Source: Oikopleura dioica (taxonomy: Eukaryota; Animalia; Chordata). Taken from it: 64,000 bases of DNA. The notes below the pieces were generated by a model that was given only the letters and a program-made list of their open reading frames with translations, was not told the origin of the DNA and did not search any database. The translations under genes and the position numbers were made by a program. The stretch lies in the NCBI GenBank assembly GCA_907165135.1, contig OU015568.1, positions 13,206,001-13,270,000 on the forward strand, given 5' to 3'. Below, one piece after another: positions 1 through 42,181 of this stretch (position 1 is its first letter; every line of letters starts with the position of its first letter).

Positions 1-414
1 TTTTTTCAAAATACACTAACTTCAGCGCCCCGTGTGGCAGGTTTGCGTTTATGAATTTTTATCTCTGTACTAGAGAATTAGCCGCTATAAACGAGCTTTC
101 ATTTGCGCTATTGCACGCGTAAAATTGAAAGCCCAAAAAAAAGTAGTTTGCCGTCGAAAATGGCGAAAACGGGGGGGGATCCCTTATTAAGACACTTCTT
201 AAATTTCTTAAAGACACTCTTTTCCGCTCTAGTTGAAGCAGAACACATGTCGAGTCCCGAAAAACAGATGCGCCAAAGGTCGACGAGCAGAAAATTAACC
301 AACTGGTCGACATGGGTTATCCTTTTAACGCCGCGATGAAAGCACTTTATCACACAAACGAAAGCCTAGAGGTTATCAATGCTCTAATAAAAGTCGAATA
401 ACGAATAAAATTAG

Positions 415-33503: not shown

Positions 33504-36378
33504 TCAAGTCAGCCGTACGGAAAAACGTGTGTTTCTCTTTGCGTAAGTGGATAACTTGTTCATTGAATTTGGAATTGATGATTGACGAATGCTTCCGTTT
33601 TTGTCCTTGTCAGCGGATGGATCTTTTCTAAAATGAACAAAAACGGCTCCAATTAGCCTACAAAGTAGGCAAAACAGTAGTTCAAAGAAAAAGCTCTGAA
33701 TGAAGACCTTGAACGATGACATTTGGTAACATGAATATTTTATTTTCGTAACACAAAAAAATAAACACCACCGACTGCAGCGTACGCTAAAATAAAAACC
33801 ATGGCAGTAATTCCTGCAGCAAAACCAGCAGTGTGTCCTTCTGAGCTCTTTCTCGTGTCAGCCGATGCCTTGAAGCAGTGAGAAGTCTTCGTTGTATCCC
33901 AACAACAGCCCAAATCTACGAATGTCTCAATTACACTTTTCTAGCTTCCTTCAATCAATTACCGTAGCAGCTCTGTTCCGTTGTACCAGAATTAGAACCT
34001 GGACAGTGGTGGATCTCAGCAGTCGCGAGGCAATTCTCAAACTTTTTCATTTTGCTGCAAATGTATCCATGAACAGCCGTTGATTCCTTGAAATGAGTTA
34101 GGAACGCTTTTTATAGAATCAAAAAACCTGAGACTCCCATCTCCCATCCACAAGCATAACTGCATTTTCTTCGTTGTCGTTTTCAACGACGAAATTTGAG
34201 AAGACAAAGTTTGACCCGTCCATCCACCTCCACGCTCCACTTTGAGTTCTTTCAGCGCCGATCCAGGCCGTCTTCAAATGAGCGCCTGTGTCTGTACTCA
34301 GAAGGCTTTTTACGAATAAATTCGTCGTCTGAGCGATAAAGTGGATAAAATTCAATGATTCTTCCTTACCAAATCATGAACAGAAGCAACAGAAGCATCA
34401 AAAGACAAGCAACTCCTACGAGCCTCAGCATAAACAACTTCTTTTCCGAAAGTTCTGAAGCAGTCAAGTCCTCCGTCTAGTGATGTCCATCCATTTTCAC
34501 ACTCGACAGGGCTCCCCAGGTGAGATGGGGCATTTTCGTCAGGAGGAGTAATCGTGTACTTGTCAAGTTTACATACAAAATTCTTTCTCGCCTCGCAATT
34601 GTTCGTCATTTTCCATTCCCATTTCTTCGGAAATTCCATAAAATTCTCAACAAAAGCACAGTTGTCTCCTGAAATGGTTCCGTCATTGCTATAAATGATG
34701 AATTTACTCGAACCTTGATGAATTCCAGGCTCATGGGCTGCCCAATTCGTGTAGTCGACTGGTAGATTATCATCCCAGACAAAGCTCGGATTGTTTTCAT
34801 CCCCATTAACAGAAAGCCCGATCCAAATTGACCTCGGCACATCAAGTTCTTGTCCGAATGCTTCAAAAACTTGCGAGTAAAGAAACGAGTCTTCATAGTG
34901 ATTCCAAATGGAGGCCAAGTGAGCGGTTCCATTGATGTTCCAATTGTTGTTCTTTCCTTCTGATTTACAGAAGTCATCTGCTTCCTGGTATGAAAGAGCC
35001 TGAGTTGTAATAACTTTGTAGCATGCACTGAAGTACGGTTTGTAGCCAAATGTACAGTTGAGTTTATATTTATCAGGATAGGAGCCCTTGTTTGTCAGCG
35101 AACTGCTCGCTGGAATCGAGCAAACGGAATACTGAGTGTTTGTCACTCCTCCAGCGACATCTTCCCAATCTCCAGGGTAAATCGACGATACCGATGGGAG
35201 CATTGCTAAATAATTAAAGTATTACAGTTTTCACGCCATTCTACCGTAGTCATCCCCTGCCTTGTAATAAGGATGGAGAACTGTGGCCACTTTATCCTGG
35301 TTAGGGCCAGCTTCGTGATGAGTGGGGTGTAACAGACGCCATTGCGAGTACAATAGTGGCTCGGAATTCGCCCATTGAAAGTGCTTCCCGATCTCAGAAT
35401 CAGACATTACTCCGATCCAAACATCAGAATCAACAAGAGATGTAACAAAAGCATGGTGAAATGGCTAAAAAGATAATCAGTCAGAAAACTGGAATAGCAA
35501 ATACCGTTGGAAGAATCGCCAAATGCGCATCAGTTCCAAGTGTCTGGCAGCTTTTTTCAGCTTGATCGAATGTTTGCCGTGAGTATTTATCTCCAGAGAA
35601 GCCGTTTTTGAGCTTGAACTTGTAGCACATGCCTGCATAGTGAATCCAGTCGCCGGATGGACATCCTCCAGCGGGGGGATTAGGTAGATCAGGATGGGGA
35701 CTTCCGTCGAGGTAGTACTCGCAAATGTAAGCTAATCAGTGTTTCCGGATGATTCATGTTTCAAAGAGATAATCCTTTATCTGATGGGAACAGGACCTGA
35801 GAGCTCATCGCATTTGTTGTCGTTCCACTCTCCCTCAACCATGTCAGTGCAGTGTTCTGTAAAAAAGATAAAAATCTTAAAATTCTACGGAAATCGAAAA
35901 ATAATCAGATTATCTTCTAAAAATTTTCATCCCCAAACAACACCGCCGACATTGTTCGGCTCTCCATCTCGCCAGATCTCGAAGTCAACGGGAGTGTGGT
36001 CCGACCAGGTGAAGCCGCAAGTAGGACAGTTCATTCTCAAGCCGATCCAGAACTGTTTGCCTGTCTCTGCTGAGCCCAAGAGATTGCGAATAGATTGCAG
36101 TTCTTCCTCGCTGTGAATTGACACAAGATGGCCATCTTTTCCTGGGAAAATTTGAAAAGAAAAATTTGGTTTTCTCAATTACCTGCTGGAGCAACTCGTT
36201 GGCATTCTTTCTCCGAGTCTGACCAGGTTCTTGGTCGGTTAAAAATCGGGTTCGAAATATCGTAGATAAAGGGCTTTACGCATTTATCAACCCCATTTAC
36301 TCTTATTTTCTCGAAATCAGAGCCAGGACAGCGGGCACACTCTGATAAGCAAAACAGTAATAATAAAAGTTTTTTCAT
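33504..36378 (-). CDS. Type I membrane receptor with about 4 C-type lectin domains (mannose-receptor-like); 3' end uncertain
   Basis: Signal peptide MKKLLLLLFCL, repeated HLxSI/WIGL(A)/W-N-W lectin motifs, EPN...WND in the first domain, and a TM segment (GFAAGITAMVFILAYAAVGGVYFF) near 33770-33840. Confidence 0.85.
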
Positions 36379-36850
36379 AATCTCAGACAGAATATTCGAT
36401 GTCTGAGATGTGCGAGACTTATTGGAGGTGTGACAACTTGGATCTTTGTTGGTTCAATAATGGAAGAAGTTACGAACTCGAGTTGTGAAGATTGCATCAA
36501 TTTGGGTTATATCATTTTGCCCTTATCAAGCGGGTGACTCATGCAAATACAGGTTCCGGTCAAAACCAGATTAGCACGCGCCGCAGGTCATTGATAATGG
36601 CGCCACCTGTTTTCCCTTTTTTGAAACGCCGAAGTGATCACAGTCACTTCAGTCACATTTTTTGCAAATTTCGAGACTTCCCTTTTCTCAAATTTTTCTA
36701 GACTTCTGTTTCAACTGGAGAAAATCTTCAAAAAAGGCATCGCGGAACTAGCGGAATAAGCTCGCATTTTTTGTAAGTCAATCATTCTCAGTTGAATCTC
36801 TCATCCCAAAAGTTGATTCAGAAACCATAACTTTACCGAGCGCCTGAGAG

Positions 36851-38381
36851 ATGAAACAGAAGACGAGCCGCAAGTGTAAGAGAAAAGTGAAAGTCAAACA
36901 AGAGATGCCTAACATGAACAAACGGTTGAAGGTGGATCCGGAGGTGATTGAAATCGAGGTAAGAGCGTTAAAATAGAGATTTCTCGGGGATTGAAGGGAA
37001 GTATGACTCATCGATTTAAAGGCGCCTAATCCGCAATCGAGCAATTTTTATTCACAAGCAGCTTGCTTGAAGCAGGTATTTTTCACCTTTCTGGCTTCAG
37101 GAGGCGAGCGAAGACATGAGGATTGAAGATGTTCCCAATGACGACATCCCTGGCCCTTCCAACCGGTACATTCCTCCACCGCCAAGCGTAGACCTCGAAA
37201 ATCAAGGTAAGAATTTAGCGATAACTTTTAATATTTCATTCTCATATTTTCAGGTCTGAACAATAACGGGAATATCGAAGAATTTCGTGAGCGTAGACGG
37301 GCTATTCTTGACAACGTAACTACATCCTTGACGGAGATGGAGAACGATTACTACACGGTAATTCAAATCAAATTTCAAATCAGCAAATTTTAGCTTTTCT
37401 CGTGGAGTAAATTATTTTCAGATCGCCGATTTAAACAAAGAACTTCTCCTTGATCGTCAGGCTCGCCAACGCCTGAAGCGAGACATCGACGAACTAGGAA
37501 GGGTCTTTATTTATTTTCGCTCGAATATTCTTAGTAATTAGTGAAAAACTCAAACAGATGCTGAAATTCAGCAAAAAACTGCCAAGAAAGACGTCTTGGA
37601 CAATGCTTACAAGAAACTCTCCAAGAGGATTGACGAGAATGAAAAATCGCTCGACAAGGCGCACGAACGAATCCGAACATTCGAAGTCTGCTACAAAAAA
37701 GTTGAGCCCAAGCCCGAAGAAAAACCAGGACAAGTTGGAGAGTTCGAGTGCCCGATTTGCAAGGAGATCTGTGGCACGGAGGAAAAGCACATGGTGTGCC
37801 TTTCGAGCTGTGGCCATCGATTCTGCAAGGACTGCATTGACAGAGTCCTAGGAACGGTTCTTTTTTCTGTTGATAAATTTGTTAATAACAAGGCAGAACC
37901 ATGAACAGATGATGCGCCTATGAATGGCCAAGCAGACAATGCTCTCTTCAATGGCGCAGGAGTCCCTGATGGAGTAAACCGACGAGATCAGTTACGACGA
38001 GATGCAGAAGAGGTTCGACAAGAGAGACGAAGATTGGAACAAGAGGTACGAAATGCGGCCAATCGTTATCTTCTCTTTCGGCAACAAAGACCCGCTGCTG
38101 TCGTTCCTCAACCACCGGCTGCCCGTGCAGCAGGTAAGAAGGGTTTGAAAATATTTTCGTAGCTTATTCTAGGAGACAACAACGCTGCGGCCCCAGTGGC
38201 AAATGTTGCCGTCAATCCACCAGCAAATCCTCCACCCCGCCATAATCTGTACTTTCCTCCCCAATTTAACCAAGGACCGGCACACGTCGTGCGGGCTCGT
38301 GCATACGATCCCCGTTTCAACCAGCGCCTTTACAACAGGAAGCGCTGCCCAACTTGCCAGACAGACTTCAGGAACTGTTGA
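36851..38381 (+). pseudogene. Split-RING protein, copy 1; in-frame TGA at 37902-37904
   Basis: Basic N-terminus, VIEIE motif, coiled coil, CPIC...CGHRFCKDC, then a long insert and terminal RCPTCQTDFRNC*. The TGA aligns with TGT (Cys) in copy 2. Confidence 0.75.
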
Positions 38382-39159
38382 CAATATCATCTTAACATAT
38401 TTCAGGGGTTAATTTCTTAAAGTTCAAATCAATCTAAAGACATTTTGTCAACTCTCTGAAACAGCCGAAATAATGTTGTTCGTCTCTTCTAGTGCGCCAA
38501 TCAATCCACGAACAACGATTCAGAATCAAACGCTCCCTTACTGAAACCTTTTACGCATCACACTGTCACCTTTATCTTCGATCTCATATTAGACGAATAA
38601 ACCTTACAGAAAATTTTCTGACCGGGGAGTTTTCTCTATTGATGCAGCGTTAAATAGTTACAAATATTGTTGATCTTTAATTTGTTACTTACTTTTATAA
38701 CGTACAAGTAACAAGTCACGGATAACCAGAATCTTTGTTGATTTAATTTTCGAAGAAATAAACGTTAAACGAAACCGACCTAATTTATTTTGCTCTTATC
38801 AAGCAGGTGACTTATAAAAACCCATTTTCCGGTCATACTCTGATTAACACGCGTTACCAGATGATGGCGCCATCTGTATTTTATTGGCACACCAGAACAG
38901 TCACAATCATTACAGTCAGTCACATTTTTCATAAATTCCAACGCGTTTTATTTTCCCGCACTTCTACTTTATCAGACTTTATCATTTCGTCAAAAAAGGT
39001 ATCACGCCGATATTTTCGATCATAAAAATAAACAGCCCATTGATAATTGCCGAGAAAAACGATAATTTTGTCAGCATTCGTCATTTTTAGTCGGTCTCCC
39101 TTTCATCGCGAATTCCAAATCAGAGACCATAACGCTCGCGCGCGCCCGAGAGAACACTC

Positions 39160-40764
39160 ATGGGACGCAAGCCAGCTCTGAGAACGAAAATAAATCACGA
39201 GAAAATAGAACTTGCCAAGAGAGAACTGAAGATGAACCAAGAGACGGAAGCGAAGCGGATGAAAATTGATCCGGACGTGATCGTCATTGAGGTGAGAACG
39301 CTGCGAGAGAGCTGTAATAAATCGAAGTTTTTCTCGTCTTGGAAAGGAAAAATGACTCAGAATCGGCGCGCCCAATCCGCAGCCGGGCTGTTTTCCCCTT
39401 CACAAGCAGATTTTTCATTTTAAGCAGGCGAGGAACGACATGAGCGACGAAGATCTCCGAGACGAAGACATGCCTGGCCCTTCCCACGCGTTCAATCCCC
39501 CATCTCCAGCTGATGAATTCGACAATCAAGGTAACTAGCGGTGGTTTGTTTTTATCAATTCATGAGCTTTTCAGACGTGAAAAACTATGCGAACATTCAA
39601 CAGGAGTTTCGTGATCGTCGACAGGCTATTCTCAACAACTTGAATTCTTCCTTGAATGAAATGGAAGCTGATTATAATGCGGTAAGCCAATTTAGCAATG
39701 TTTTCTTTGTCTTATAATGAGTTTCACGAATTATAATTTTCAGATTGCCATCCTCAATGACGAACTTCTCCTTGATCGACAGACTAGCCAACGATTGAAG
39801 CGCGATATCGACGAACTAGGAATGTTTTAATAAAATAATGAATGAATAAATAAATGAATATTAATTCCAAGAATTCAATTAAAAACATCGAACAGCCGCT
39901 GAGATTCAATTGAAAAGTGCCCAGAAAGATGTCCTCGATAAAAAGTACGAGACTATCAACAAGAAGATTGAAACGAACGAAAAATCCCTCGATAGTGCAG
40001 AAGAAAGAATCCGAACATTTGAAGTTCGATACAAGCGAGATCAACAGAAACCCGACGAAAAGCCGGGAAAAGTTGGCGAGTTTGAGTGTCCGATTTGCAA
40101 GGAGATCTGTGGCACGGAAGAAAAGCACATGGTGTGTCTTATAAACTGTGGCCATCGTTTCTGCAAAGACTGCATTGACAGAGTCCTAGGAACGGCTCCC
40201 CTTTATGTTACTCGATTTTCTTGAAAACAAGGAGGAACCATGTAAAGACGACGCCAACAATGATAGAGAAGAAAGACGCCGTCATCGAATCAATGCTTTT
40301 CTCGACGAGCAACAACGTCTATTCAATGGGTTTGATGGAGTACGGCGAGAAGCAGAACAAGCACGACAAATGGCAGTAGAACTACGGCAGGCAGCTGATG
40401 AAATACGACGGGGTCCCCGCCAAGCGCGAATTGCAAGAAGAGCAGCCCGTCCTTATGGCGTGAGACTTGATGTCCCTGGGGATCCCGTTGCTGCCGATGC
40501 TCAACCTGCACCTGCCGGCGCAGAAGGTAAGAAAGTTGTCAAAGTCTCTTCCCAAAAGAATCTTTAGGAGACAACAATGCTGCAGATCCTCTGGCGGATA
40601 ACGTCGCAAACCCACCGGCGGCCGGTCGTCAAATACCTCGCCTATACCAGCGTCACCGTTTGGGAAGGCACATGATGATTGGCCGTGATTGGAGAGATGA
40701 CAATTTCGGCCGCTTTCTCAACAAACGATGCCCAACATGCCAGAAAAACTTCAGGAACTGTTGA
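39160..40764 (+). CDS. Split-RING protein, copy 2 (tandem paralogue)
   Basis: Same exon layout as copy 1, with a VIVIE motif and a near-identical CPICKEICGTEEKHMVC..CGHRFCKDC exon. It has a GC-AG intron at 40195-40231 and terminal RCPTCQKNFRNC*. Confidence 0.8.
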
Positions 40765-42181
40765 AAGATAATCATAACATGATTCTAAAGACTTTTGCAG
40801 AAATAAATCAATTTTGAATCGCCCCAAATTATTTTTTTTATTTTTCAACATGCTGAAAAAGACGAGAAAATGTCGTCCGACTCTTCTAGTACTTCAACCA
40901 ACTCACGAGCAAAGACTTAAAAACACACATACACCGACTTCTTATTGAAACCTTTCGTCCATTTCTCTCTCACCTTGATCTTCGATTCTTATCAGTCAAA
41001 TAAACCTCCCATAAAAACTGATCAACTCTGAGTTTCATCATGCAGATAATTTTATATATCAAGCAATACGGAGCTGAAAATGTTTTTGATATCGAGTGGT
41101 TCGACCGGGAAGACAGCTGCGCTAAATTATTCATCAATCGCAACATAGCTGGTTTCATACTTACTCTTCGGTACTCTTCCTTTTCAATGAACGTCCATTT
41201 TTGTCGACGAGAAAATAAAACAGGACGATGAGTGATATTTGTGGACAGAAAACGAACTTTGATTTTTATATTCTTGCTGGTCTCATGGTCAACCTTTTTC
41301 TTATAGGTAAGCATTTATGGTACGGCCATTGATTTTTAATAACCGATAGGGCCGTCTATAATGTGGGTAATCCTCCGCTATTTCTCAAAAAAGCTCGATG
41401 AAGGAAGAGAGGATGTCTATGGCAGGCCGATTGTTCCGATAACTCCTGGAAGAAGCTTCTCAGCGGCAAATTGGTCTGGATTTATGAGCGTTAGAGACAT
41501 TGAAGACACTGATTTCTACTGATTAGAATTAAATAAATGAAATCTCTAGAAAAATGATACTGAATGTTTTGAAGCGAGATATTTATTTCAGTTTTCCTGC
41601 TGGAGGCTCTTGAATATTTAATAGGAAGAGTTCAATTTGTTTTTTCTTGAAATAGAAATGAGTTGACATAATAATCCCTGCTCTTTTAGACCACAAATTA
41701 CCTTTTGCTTAGCCCAATTTCATTCTTTTAATCCACGCACCTTCACTGCAAAGGGTTTAAAAACAGTTTGAACCCAATCAGTTCTTTTTTTAAATGTCAA
41801 AGAGAAATGATGTTCTTCCATCCGGCGCGAATCTCAGAAGAAAACAAAGCGTTACTAAGAAGTTGAAAAAGTACGCCATACAAAATTAATATTCATTAAA
41901 TGTCATTAAGGCTACTGGTGGCTTTCACGTGCACCTCTACGCTGACCGACGAGTTTGACTCCGTGGATGATTATGAATTGCCCTTCGCGGAGTTCGACGA
42001 TGTCCGAACAATTCGAAGCTTCAGAAACTAAAGATCTGTGCAGATACGAAGATGATATTTATTTAACAAAATAAGCAAGAATAATGGATGTTTTCTATTC
42101 GATTTCGGTTTGCTTTAATTTTTGATATAATGGTAATAGTCTATTACTAATAGACTGAAGCAGTATTTTTTCTTGACGCGT

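Follow-up and report, generated by a model that had tools for sequence, protein, structure and literature searches.

Two tandem genes of Oikopleura dioica, a planktonic tunicate, referred to as copy 1 and copy 2, lie in the 64,000-nucleotide stretch of contig OU015568.1 (assembly GCA_907165135.1, positions 13,206,001 to 13,270,000) analysed here and referred to as the window. Both encode a RING domain in which the last pair of zinc ligands is separated from the other six by a long insertion. With a probability of about 0.7, the two copies are tandem paralogues of a RING-HC ubiquitin-ligase gene specific to the Oikopleura lineage; their RING would be normal, the insertion looping out of it as an arm for docking or regulation. 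The RING-HC subfamily of O. dioica to which they belong, with an insertion of 83–152 residues in the last loop, is real, transcribed and conserved, and its interrupted RING is an unusual but explicable form of a very common domain.

The two copies form tandem units of ∼2.3 kb (36480–38700 and 38760–41060), which could be aligned over their full length, promoters included. Copy 1 corresponds to the annotated gene g12231 on chromosome PAR of the Okinawa assembly OKI2018_I69. Its exon 5 showed 100% identity to the database protein P0001 in a protein library search, the P0001 cluster being Oidioi.mRNA.OKI2018_I69.PAR.g12231.t2/.t1 (CAG5089478.1/CAG5089475.1). Each copy consists of eight exons, separated by four GT..AG and three GA..AG introns of 39–157 nucleotides (nt). 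The coding sequence comprises 374 codons in copy 1 (36851–38492) and 396 codons in copy 2 (39160–40889). The features of the two genes, in window positions, are as follows.

36851–36943, plus strand: copy 1 exon 1, basic N-terminus resembling a nuclear localization signal (MKQKTSRKCKRKVKVK...), ending at the upstream GT donor of the RNA contig
36944–36958, plus strand: copy 1, 15 nt coding for VIEIE, between the in-frame GT donors GTGATT (36944) and GTAAGA (36959)
37101–37206, 37254–37357 and 37422–37497, plus strand: copy 1 exons 2–4, acidic/Pro-rich region and PGPS motif, then the start of the coiled coil
37558–37851, plus strand: copy 1 exon 5, end of the coiled coil, RING ligands C1–C6 (37749–37835) and central helix IDRVL, followed by a GA donor
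37909–38345, plus strand: copy 1 RING-loop insertion, made up of exon 6 (37909–38133) and the first part of exon 7 (38173–38345)
38346–38371, plus strand: copy 1 CPTC (C7/C8, 38346–38357) and start of the tail, with a GA donor at the end
38465–38492, plus strand: copy 1 exon 8, a mini-exon encoding ..RNNVVRLF and the stop codon TAG
39160–39276 (39291 with VIVIE), 39428 (or 39425)–39530, 39575–39681 and 39744–39819, plus strand: copy 2 exons 1–4
39896–40189, plus strand: copy 2 exon 5, end of the coiled coil and RING ligands C1–C6 (40087–40173), followed by a GA donor
40248–40728, plus strand: copy 2 insertion, made up of exon 6 (40248–40526) and the first part of exon 7 (40568–40728)
40729–40754, plus strand: copy 2 CPTC (40729–40740) and start of the tail, followed by a GA donor
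40862–40889, plus strand: copy 2 exon 8, a mini-exon encoding ..RENVVRLF and the stop codon TAG

In copy 1, exon 6 encodes an Arg/Glu-rich helix and the first part of exon 7 a Pro/Ala/Asn-rich and then basic segment, the two exons being separated by a 39-nt GT..AG intron (38134–38172). The GA..AG introns are introns 4, 5 and 7 in both copies, with the donors CTAG/GAAGGG, CTAG/GAACGG and TTCAG/GAACTG, respectively (the slash marks the splice site). GT donors situated a few bases downstream of the GA donors, after 'DELGR' and 'RVLGT', were rejected as being out of frame with every AG acceptor. Since introns 4 and 5 could not stay in frame with GT donors, the GA donors, which both copies share with other lineages, were adopted. 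GA-AG introns have been described as frequent in O. dioica (PMC7072748). The third GA..AG intron (38372–38464 in copy 1 and 40755–40861 in copy 2) starts inside the presumed last codons FR/NC and leads to the mini-exon, so that both proteins end in ..F(S/R)R(N/E)NVVRLF, with stop codons at 38490–38492 and 40887–40889. A preliminary sequence-only reading of this locus had placed the C-terminus at FRNC; this was overturned by an RNA contig for copy 2 and a deposited model for copy 1, and the end coordinate of 40764 proved too early. Likewise, the insert lengths of ∼145 and 159 residues proposed there were corrected to 138 and 152 residues once the GA..AG junctions were in place.

Several of the exon joints were observed in RNA. 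Contigs of a marine-plankton metatranscriptome (X1) contained pieces of copy 1 without mismatch, and covered its joints 36943/37101, 37206/37254 and 38133/38173 (exons 1–2, 2–3 and 6–7). For copy 2, an X1 contig carried the GA..AG joint 40754/40862 (exons 7–8), and positions 39894–40099 were covered by a further X1 contig (record 3). The deposited models P0001 and P0019 contain the same GA..AG introns and the same tail as the gene models of the window.

Analysis of exon 5 showed that both copies encode CPICKEICGTEEKHMVCL..CGHRFCKDC, i.e., the ligands C1–C6 (CPIC, 16 residues, C.H..C..C), with RCPTCQ..F following at a distance. Alignment of the two units upheld the initial description of tandem paralogues having CPIC..CGHRFCKDC in one exon and a distal CPTC. 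The distance between C6 and C7 is 138 residues in copy 1 and 152 residues in copy 2, and exactly 13 residues follow C8 in both. All eight zinc ligands are present in the order C-C-C-H-C-C-C-C and are invariant in alignments A1 and A2, which include 26 canonical paralogues. The residues expected to contact the ubiquitin-conjugating enzyme (E2), Ile of CPIC and Pro of CPTC, are also present. The spacing departs from the RING signature C-x2-C-x(9-39)-C-x(1-3)-H-x(2-3)-C-x2-C-x(4-48)-C-x2-C (quoted in PMC6118397), as the C2–C3 loop of 16 residues fits but the C6–C7 loop of 138, 152 or, in relatives from other lineages, 96 residues exceeds 48. Similarly, the Pfam RING models matched exon 5 and the full-length P0019 at profile positions 1 to 25–35 of 39–44 only, as against 1–42 of 43 for a canonical paralogue.

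A C6–C7 distance 2–3 times the accepted maximum of 48 residues (PMC6118397) could mean that the RING is degenerate, the insertion blocking zinc site II. The proteins would then lack ligase activity and provide a coiled-coil scaffold, or else pair with or inhibit canonical members. The Gln that takes the place of the 'linchpin' Arg would fit such a view, as would the family member L004, in which C7/C8 appear to have been lost altogether, an indication that RING decay occurs in this family. This explanation was nevertheless considered unlikely in light of the conservation described below: C7, the intervening Pro and C8 are invariant in every lineage seen, and the tail mini-exon with its GA..AG intron is kept in all lineages. 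The invariance of C7/C8 also answers one of the refuting conditions set at the outset, namely terminal cysteines not conserved in orthologues.

Comparison of the two copies revealed uneven divergence along the protein. The N-terminal part of the RING showed 94% amino acid identity with a ratio of nonsynonymous to synonymous substitution (dN/dS) of 0.11; the corresponding values were 79% and 0.17 for CPTC and the tail, 67% and 0.13 for the coiled coil, and 37% and ∼0.38 for the insert, the ratios being rough as dS is saturated outside the RING. The higher identity and lower dN/dS of CPTC and the tail compared with the insert argue against a degenerate RING, and are in agreement with the early observation of an Arg/Ala/Pro-rich insert that spans two exons and has diverged strongly while CPTC was retained. 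Within exon 5, the last 114 nt, which encode the N-terminal part of the RING (37738–37851 vs. 40076–40189), showed 90% nucleotide identity between the copies as against 71% for the first 180 nt, and dS was 0.36 there as against ∼1.6 elsewhere. This low divergence could be due to gene conversion or to a constraint at the nucleotide level.

The genome of O. dioica harbors a large family of related genes. A genome search with exon 5 identified the two tandem copies as the only close relatives, the weaker matches being coiled-coil and RING genes in which these motifs occupy a single open reading frame (ORF). When the RING and tail of one such canonical paralogue (L005) were used as the query, as had been recommended in the form of a search for more family members, at least 147 genomic matches were obtained at E ≤ 0.001, most of which reached the last residue of the tail; the window genes matched only the first half of this query. 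In 28 paralogue ORFs, the C6–C7 loop measured 6–18 residues, most commonly 8, and the tail after C8 comprised 13 residues in most, ending in most with (I/V)(I/V)(K/R)L(F/Y) and a stop. A word-index protein search with the same canonical paralogue returned 73 candidates, none of which scored. Alignment A1, consisting of four split proteins and 26 canonical paralogue ORFs, showed C178, C181, C198, H200, C203, C206, C345, P346 and C348 (P0019 numbering) to be invariant and F352 nearly so, and the single large gap of the paralogues fell exactly at the extra sequence of the window genes. This alignment, together with the tail shared with short-loop members, identifies the distal CPTC as the homologue of C7/C8 and the intervening sequence as an insertion after the central helix (..CIDRVL). 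The window genes conform to the family pattern of CL..CGH..C..C, CP.C, a 13-residue tail ending (I/V)(I/V)(K/R)L(F/Y), and a coiled coil upstream.

Two further members of the family deserve mention. The locus L004 (1441–1599, minus strand; G000:C1 ∼6217412–6217570) has intact C1–C6 and the tail ENIIKLY followed by a stop, with no CP.C pair in its ORF, and judging from its sequence looks like a RING that has lost C7/C8. On the minus strand of L046 (G000:C2:7949000–7952300), C1–C6 are followed by a stop, and an ORF with CPHCRTSFCDEDMIRVHE and a stop begins 774 nt downstream of the RING start; this points either to a long intron at the corresponding place in the loop or to another split RING of independent origin.

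Relatives of the window genes were also found in other lineages. Among 1.84 billion representative proteins, 18 matched exon 5 at E ≤ 0.001, and 7 of the 18 belong to the split subfamily. In the Bergen (Atlantic) O. dioica protein CBY15737.1 (P0020) and its metatranscriptome relatives P0024 and P0004, the loop is Arg/Glu-rich, measures 96 residues and is followed by RRCPTCQKNFSKRNVIRL(Y/F) and a stop. The Bergen genome (L051) encodes the insert together with CPTC in a single exon, succeeded by the same GA..AG intron and tail mini-exon; exons for the basic region, the VIEIE-type motif or PGPS were looked for in the region upstream of the Bergen gene and none was found. The metagenome lineage L054 has a GA donor after RVL, a loop of ∼83 residues, CPTCQKHF, a GA..AG intron and the tail KKNVIRLY with a stop, and its loop motif NAADDAANP resembles GDNNAA.P of Okinawa. 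Five of the seven database relatives (P0002, P0003, P0005, P0006, and P0007) stem from predictions that break down at the GA..AG intron, and are either cut short or read through.

Retention of the insert in mature mRNA was evident from two cDNA contigs of the Atlantic type, L052 (1489 nt, from a JGI metatranscriptome) and L053 (1042 nt, from an RNA run), each of which carries the N-terminal RING part, the insert, CPTC and NVIRLF followed by a stop as one uninterrupted ORF. Transcripts that splice out the insert to give a normal RING had been named at the start as a refuting outcome; the cDNA contigs keep the insert. Exon 6 is symmetric (phase 1-1; 225 and 279 nt), such that its skipping would preserve the frame, and the exon 5–exon 6 joint of the Okinawa genes lies outside read coverage. 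Even so, it is highly improbable that the insert is skipped in the main mRNA to yield a canonical RING, with the long loop confined to a minor or unproductive isoform. Skipping of exon 6 would still leave ∼60 insert residues from exon 7. Immediately ahead of CPTC, copy 2 has no AG, and the only one that copy 1 has is not in frame. In the Bergen genome a single exon holds both the insert and CPTC, and in the X1 RNA exons 6 and 7 are joined.

The Atlantic cDNAs (L052:1–700 and L053:1–250; genome L051:5700–6010) also contain an astacin-like metalloprotease gene with a poly-Thr tail, cis-spliced onto the exon with the start codon of the RING gene. This start codon lies in an exon ∼40 nt past the stop of the astacin-like protease, the transcript being of the bicistronic or operon type.

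Tertiary structure was predicted with AlphaFold for the database protein P0019 (using alignment A1) and for the cDNA-verified orthologue P0024. The P0019 model consists of a helix at 58–161 corresponding to the coiled coil (predicted local distance difference test, pLDDT, 92–98), an N-terminal RING part at 175–212 (pLDDT 90–96) and a C-terminal RING part at 341–360 (pLDDT 89–93). Within the insert, a helix was predicted at 233–271 (pLDDT 94–97), the hydrophobic residues of which follow a heptad pattern by eye, along with a short helix at 333–340; residues 216–231 and most of 284–330 were disordered (pLDDT <50). In the P0024 model, the insert helices span 149–193 and 214–229. Superposition with VIA-align matched P0019 to RNF4 4ap4_A with Z 9.0 and a root-mean-square deviation of 1.7 Å over 57 residues (model range 176..361), to RNF4 2xeu_A with Z 8.8 and 1.9 Å over 60 of 64 residues, and to Bre1 8ieg_A with Z 8.6; P0024 matched the RNF4 RING with Z 9.3 and 1.7 Å over 57 residues (range 108..251). 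A cross-brace built from both ligand halves is thus predicted in the two models, with 57–60 residues superposed on whole RNF4 RINGs at 1.7–2.2 Å. As the halves measure only ∼40 and 21 residues, an alignment of 57–60 residues requires both. A Foldseek search with the whole P0019 model returned matches to the N-terminal half of RINGs only, with E above 0.02, because the insertion breaks the local alignment. That both models bring the two halves into one RING is a further point against the insertion blocking zinc site II, and the AlphaFold check suggested by the sequence-only reading, whether the distal CPTC would complete the cross-brace, came out in its favor in P0019 and P0024 alike. Its central proposal of a ligase whose RING closes around a large variable loop is therefore supported as regards the closure, by the family alignment of C1–C8, the cross-lineage conservation, the cDNA contigs and both models; its assignment to the SUMO-targeted ubiquitin ligases (STUbLs) is not, as discussed below.

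To evaluate the oligomeric state, two chains of P0019 residues 165–361 were modelled together, and scored 0.53 compared with 0.01 for the best of three controls. In calibration, the dimer mark was reached by 20 of 30 same-chain pairs and 1 of 23 single chains, and among eukaryotes by 17 of 29 and 0 of 30, respectively. Contact agreement between the runs was at least 43% and partner pLDDT at least 56. The predicted interface comprises residues 170–177, 184, 194, 196, 198–201 and 347 and the tail residues 358–361, an RNF4-type arrangement with the insert outside the interface. Based on these models, an RNF4-like fold and dimer are most likely for the RING.

Several observations weigh against the reading of the window genes as RING ligases bearing an extruded loop. 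Immediately after C8, RNF4 and most paralogues carry the 'linchpin' Arg but every split member has Gln, and this could make for weak activity. Canonical paralogues served as alignment rows for the structure prediction, and closure of the RING was partly imposed by homology; the passing score of the dimer may reflect solved RNF4 dimers that the tool has memorised, a possibility given in its own warning. The coverage gap at the Okinawa exon 5–exon 6 joint belongs here as well, and three bulk RNA-seq runs under the species label yielded 0, 2 and 0 reads for the stretch, too few to serve as a test of expression. With regard to a binding partner, the insert exons matched no Pfam family and occurred nowhere else in the genome.

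The insert itself bears the marks of coding sequence. Its frame is open across 138–152 codons despite the 37% identity between the copies, and the exon-length differences between the copies (54 nt in exon 6 and 12 nt in exon 7) are both multiples of three. The loops are Arg-rich, with a pI of 10.3–11.1, and contain no Cys, and hence offer no alternative zinc ligands. The exon 6 sequences of the two copies failed to find each other in the genome search, which also revealed no donor of the insertion. At position 38081, an X1 contig carried a CAC insertion adding one His within the insert, an instance of allelic loop-length variation; the triplet falls after a complete codon and is in frame.

It is envisaged that the protein is organised, from the N-terminus, as a basic region resembling a nuclear localization signal, an optional SUMO-interacting motif (SIM)-like element, a coiled coil of ∼100 residues, C1–C6 with the central helix, the insertion of 138–152 residues, CPTC, and a 13-residue tail ending in VVRLF. 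The insertion would begin with an Arg/Glu-rich amphipathic helix of ∼40 residues and continue through a disordered Pro/Ala/Asn-rich linker to a short basic stretch. The RING would adopt the normal cross-brace, coordinating zinc with all eight ligands and acting as a ubiquitin ligase. The insertion would loop out after the end of the central helix and before zinc site II, beside the E2-binding face, and two RINGs would pair via the N-flank and the C-terminal tail as in RNF4. Our best guess is that the insertion is a rapidly evolving arm next to the E2~ubiquitin site that docks partners or substrates or has a regulatory role. A more specific role, which we regard as quite unlikely, is that of a switch, zinc site II closing or E2~ubiquitin gaining access only upon docking of the Arg-rich amphipathic helix, which might take place on a nucleic acid, on an acidic protein or on the coiled coil of the protein itself. 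If true, this would amount to a ligand-gated RING in a family of >100 members, with specificity set by a rapidly changing loop.

The N-terminal regions are basic and carry VIEIE (36944–36958) in copy 1 and VIVIE (39277–39291) in copy 2, as originally described and found again in the genomic sequence. The motif fits the SIM core (V/I)(V/I)x(V/I), has acidic flanks and aligns with DDDIQIVDV of L054. Moreover, RNF4 is the best solved match of the family RING by fold and by sequence (E 1.2e-9 for a tandem construct and ∼1e-4 for single RINGs). On these grounds, the proteins could be STUbLs, in which VIEIE/VIVIE would bind SUMO and an RNF4-like RING would ubiquitylate sumoylated targets; the claim is weak, and its likelihood was judged to be low. 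Each protein has a single SIM-like motif rather than a tandem array, and the pattern is not specific, for it recurs in the RING tail and, in copy 2, within the coiled coil. VIEIE is exonic in P0001/P0019, but in the only RNA contig over exon 1 of copy 1, from X1, it is intronic, being removed by the upstream donor at 36944 (the GT of the Val codon). In each copy, the VIEIE/VIVIE codons are bracketed by a pair of in-frame GT donors separated by 15 nt, and alternative splicing could toggle the five-residue motif. The Atlantic cDNA starts at MGNLQ without any N-terminal region and so lacks the motif, and in the Tara lineage L056 the SIM core is lost and reads QNVAAR. In addition, the RNF4-like RING is common to at least 147 paralogue matches with unrelated N-termini. 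Of the traits that define STUbLs, tandem SIMs are absent, and a SIM is not consistently retained in the mature protein and orthologues, being present in L054 and the deposited models; a dimeric RING with a C-terminal aromatic tail is there as a prediction.

Alignment of the two units also revealed conserved non-coding sequence, of which the upstream feature is the following.

36518–36660 (copy 2, ∼38790–38930), plus strand: conserved upstream blocks CTTATCAAGC.GGTGACT, TTCCGGTCA, ATGGCGCCA.CTGT and TCAGTCACATTTTT, recognised by alignment

These blocks probably represent a shared promoter. Conserved blocks were also observed in intron 1 (36990–37075; copy 2, ∼39340–39410), namely ATGACTC, GCGCC.AATCCGCA and TTCACAAGCAG, and judging from the alignment the blocks of both regions probably act as regulatory elements common to the two units. 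Minus-strand ORFs at 35927–36378, immediately upstream of copy 1, resemble a C-type lectin-like secreted protein, with a signal-like MKKLLLLLFCL start and a WIGL..C..C..W.D motif.

The accepted signature allows up to 48 residues between C6 and C7, whereas a conserved and transcribed subfamily carries 83–152 with all ligands and the dimerising tail kept. If the split RING proves active, it would show the carrying capacity of the last RING loop and represent a natural module graft beside the E2-binding face. There are also consequences for annotation, as domain scanners detect only three quarters of the split RING and gene predictors that ignore GA..AG introns truncate split-RING proteins, as seen in five of the seven database relatives. 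For the biology of Oikopleura, the analysis exposes a very large Oikopleura-specific expansion of one coiled-coil and RING module.

Several known systems can be compared with the split RING. The RING region of yeast San1 is much longer than canonical owing to a disordered insertion, and its disordered regions bind substrates, which would make it a precedent for the tolerance of a long loop by a RING. San1 differs from the window proteins in its unrelated sequence, and is not known to have a coiled coil or a helix-rich insert. In the literature on San1, only C279 was confirmed to lie within the RING, and the literature on RINGs with long insertions (San1, 'split RING') offered no usable report. 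Bre1/RNF20-RNF40 resembles the window proteins in having a long coiled coil followed by a C-terminal RING, with fold Z scores of 8.6–8.8 and a sequence match of E ∼1e-4 for a paralogue. The tail CPKCNAAFGANDFHRIY matches CPTCQTDFSRNNVVRLF in spacing. However, Bre1 proteins are 700–1000 residues long with a short RING loop, and none was present among the 18 matches of the library-wide exon 5 search.

RNF4 (PDB 4ap4, 2xeu, and 3ng2) is the closest in fold. It shares with the window proteins the C3HC4 ligands, a long C2–C3 loop, CPTC as the final ligand pair and a short C-terminal tail with an aromatic residue at its end, and it was the best fold match of the split RING (Z 9.0–9.3, 1.7 Å, 57 residues) as well as the best sequence match for canonical family members; the dimer predicted for the window protein, through the N-flank and the tail, is likewise of its type. 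It differs in having 9 residues between C6 and C7 as compared with 96–152 in the split proteins, four tandem SIMs, no coiled coil, and the linchpin Arg in place of Gln. The likeness to RNF4 lies in the RING fold and tail, which are common to the whole paralogue family, and does not amount to a claim of orthology. Another system for comparison is the coiled-coil and C-terminal RING family of O. dioica itself, which shares C.(I/V)C, CL..CGH..C..C, CP.C, the 13-residue tail and a coiled coil just upstream. Its canonical members have 6–18 residues between C6 and C7 in one ORF, whereas the window genes and their orthologues have 83–152 residues plus introns.

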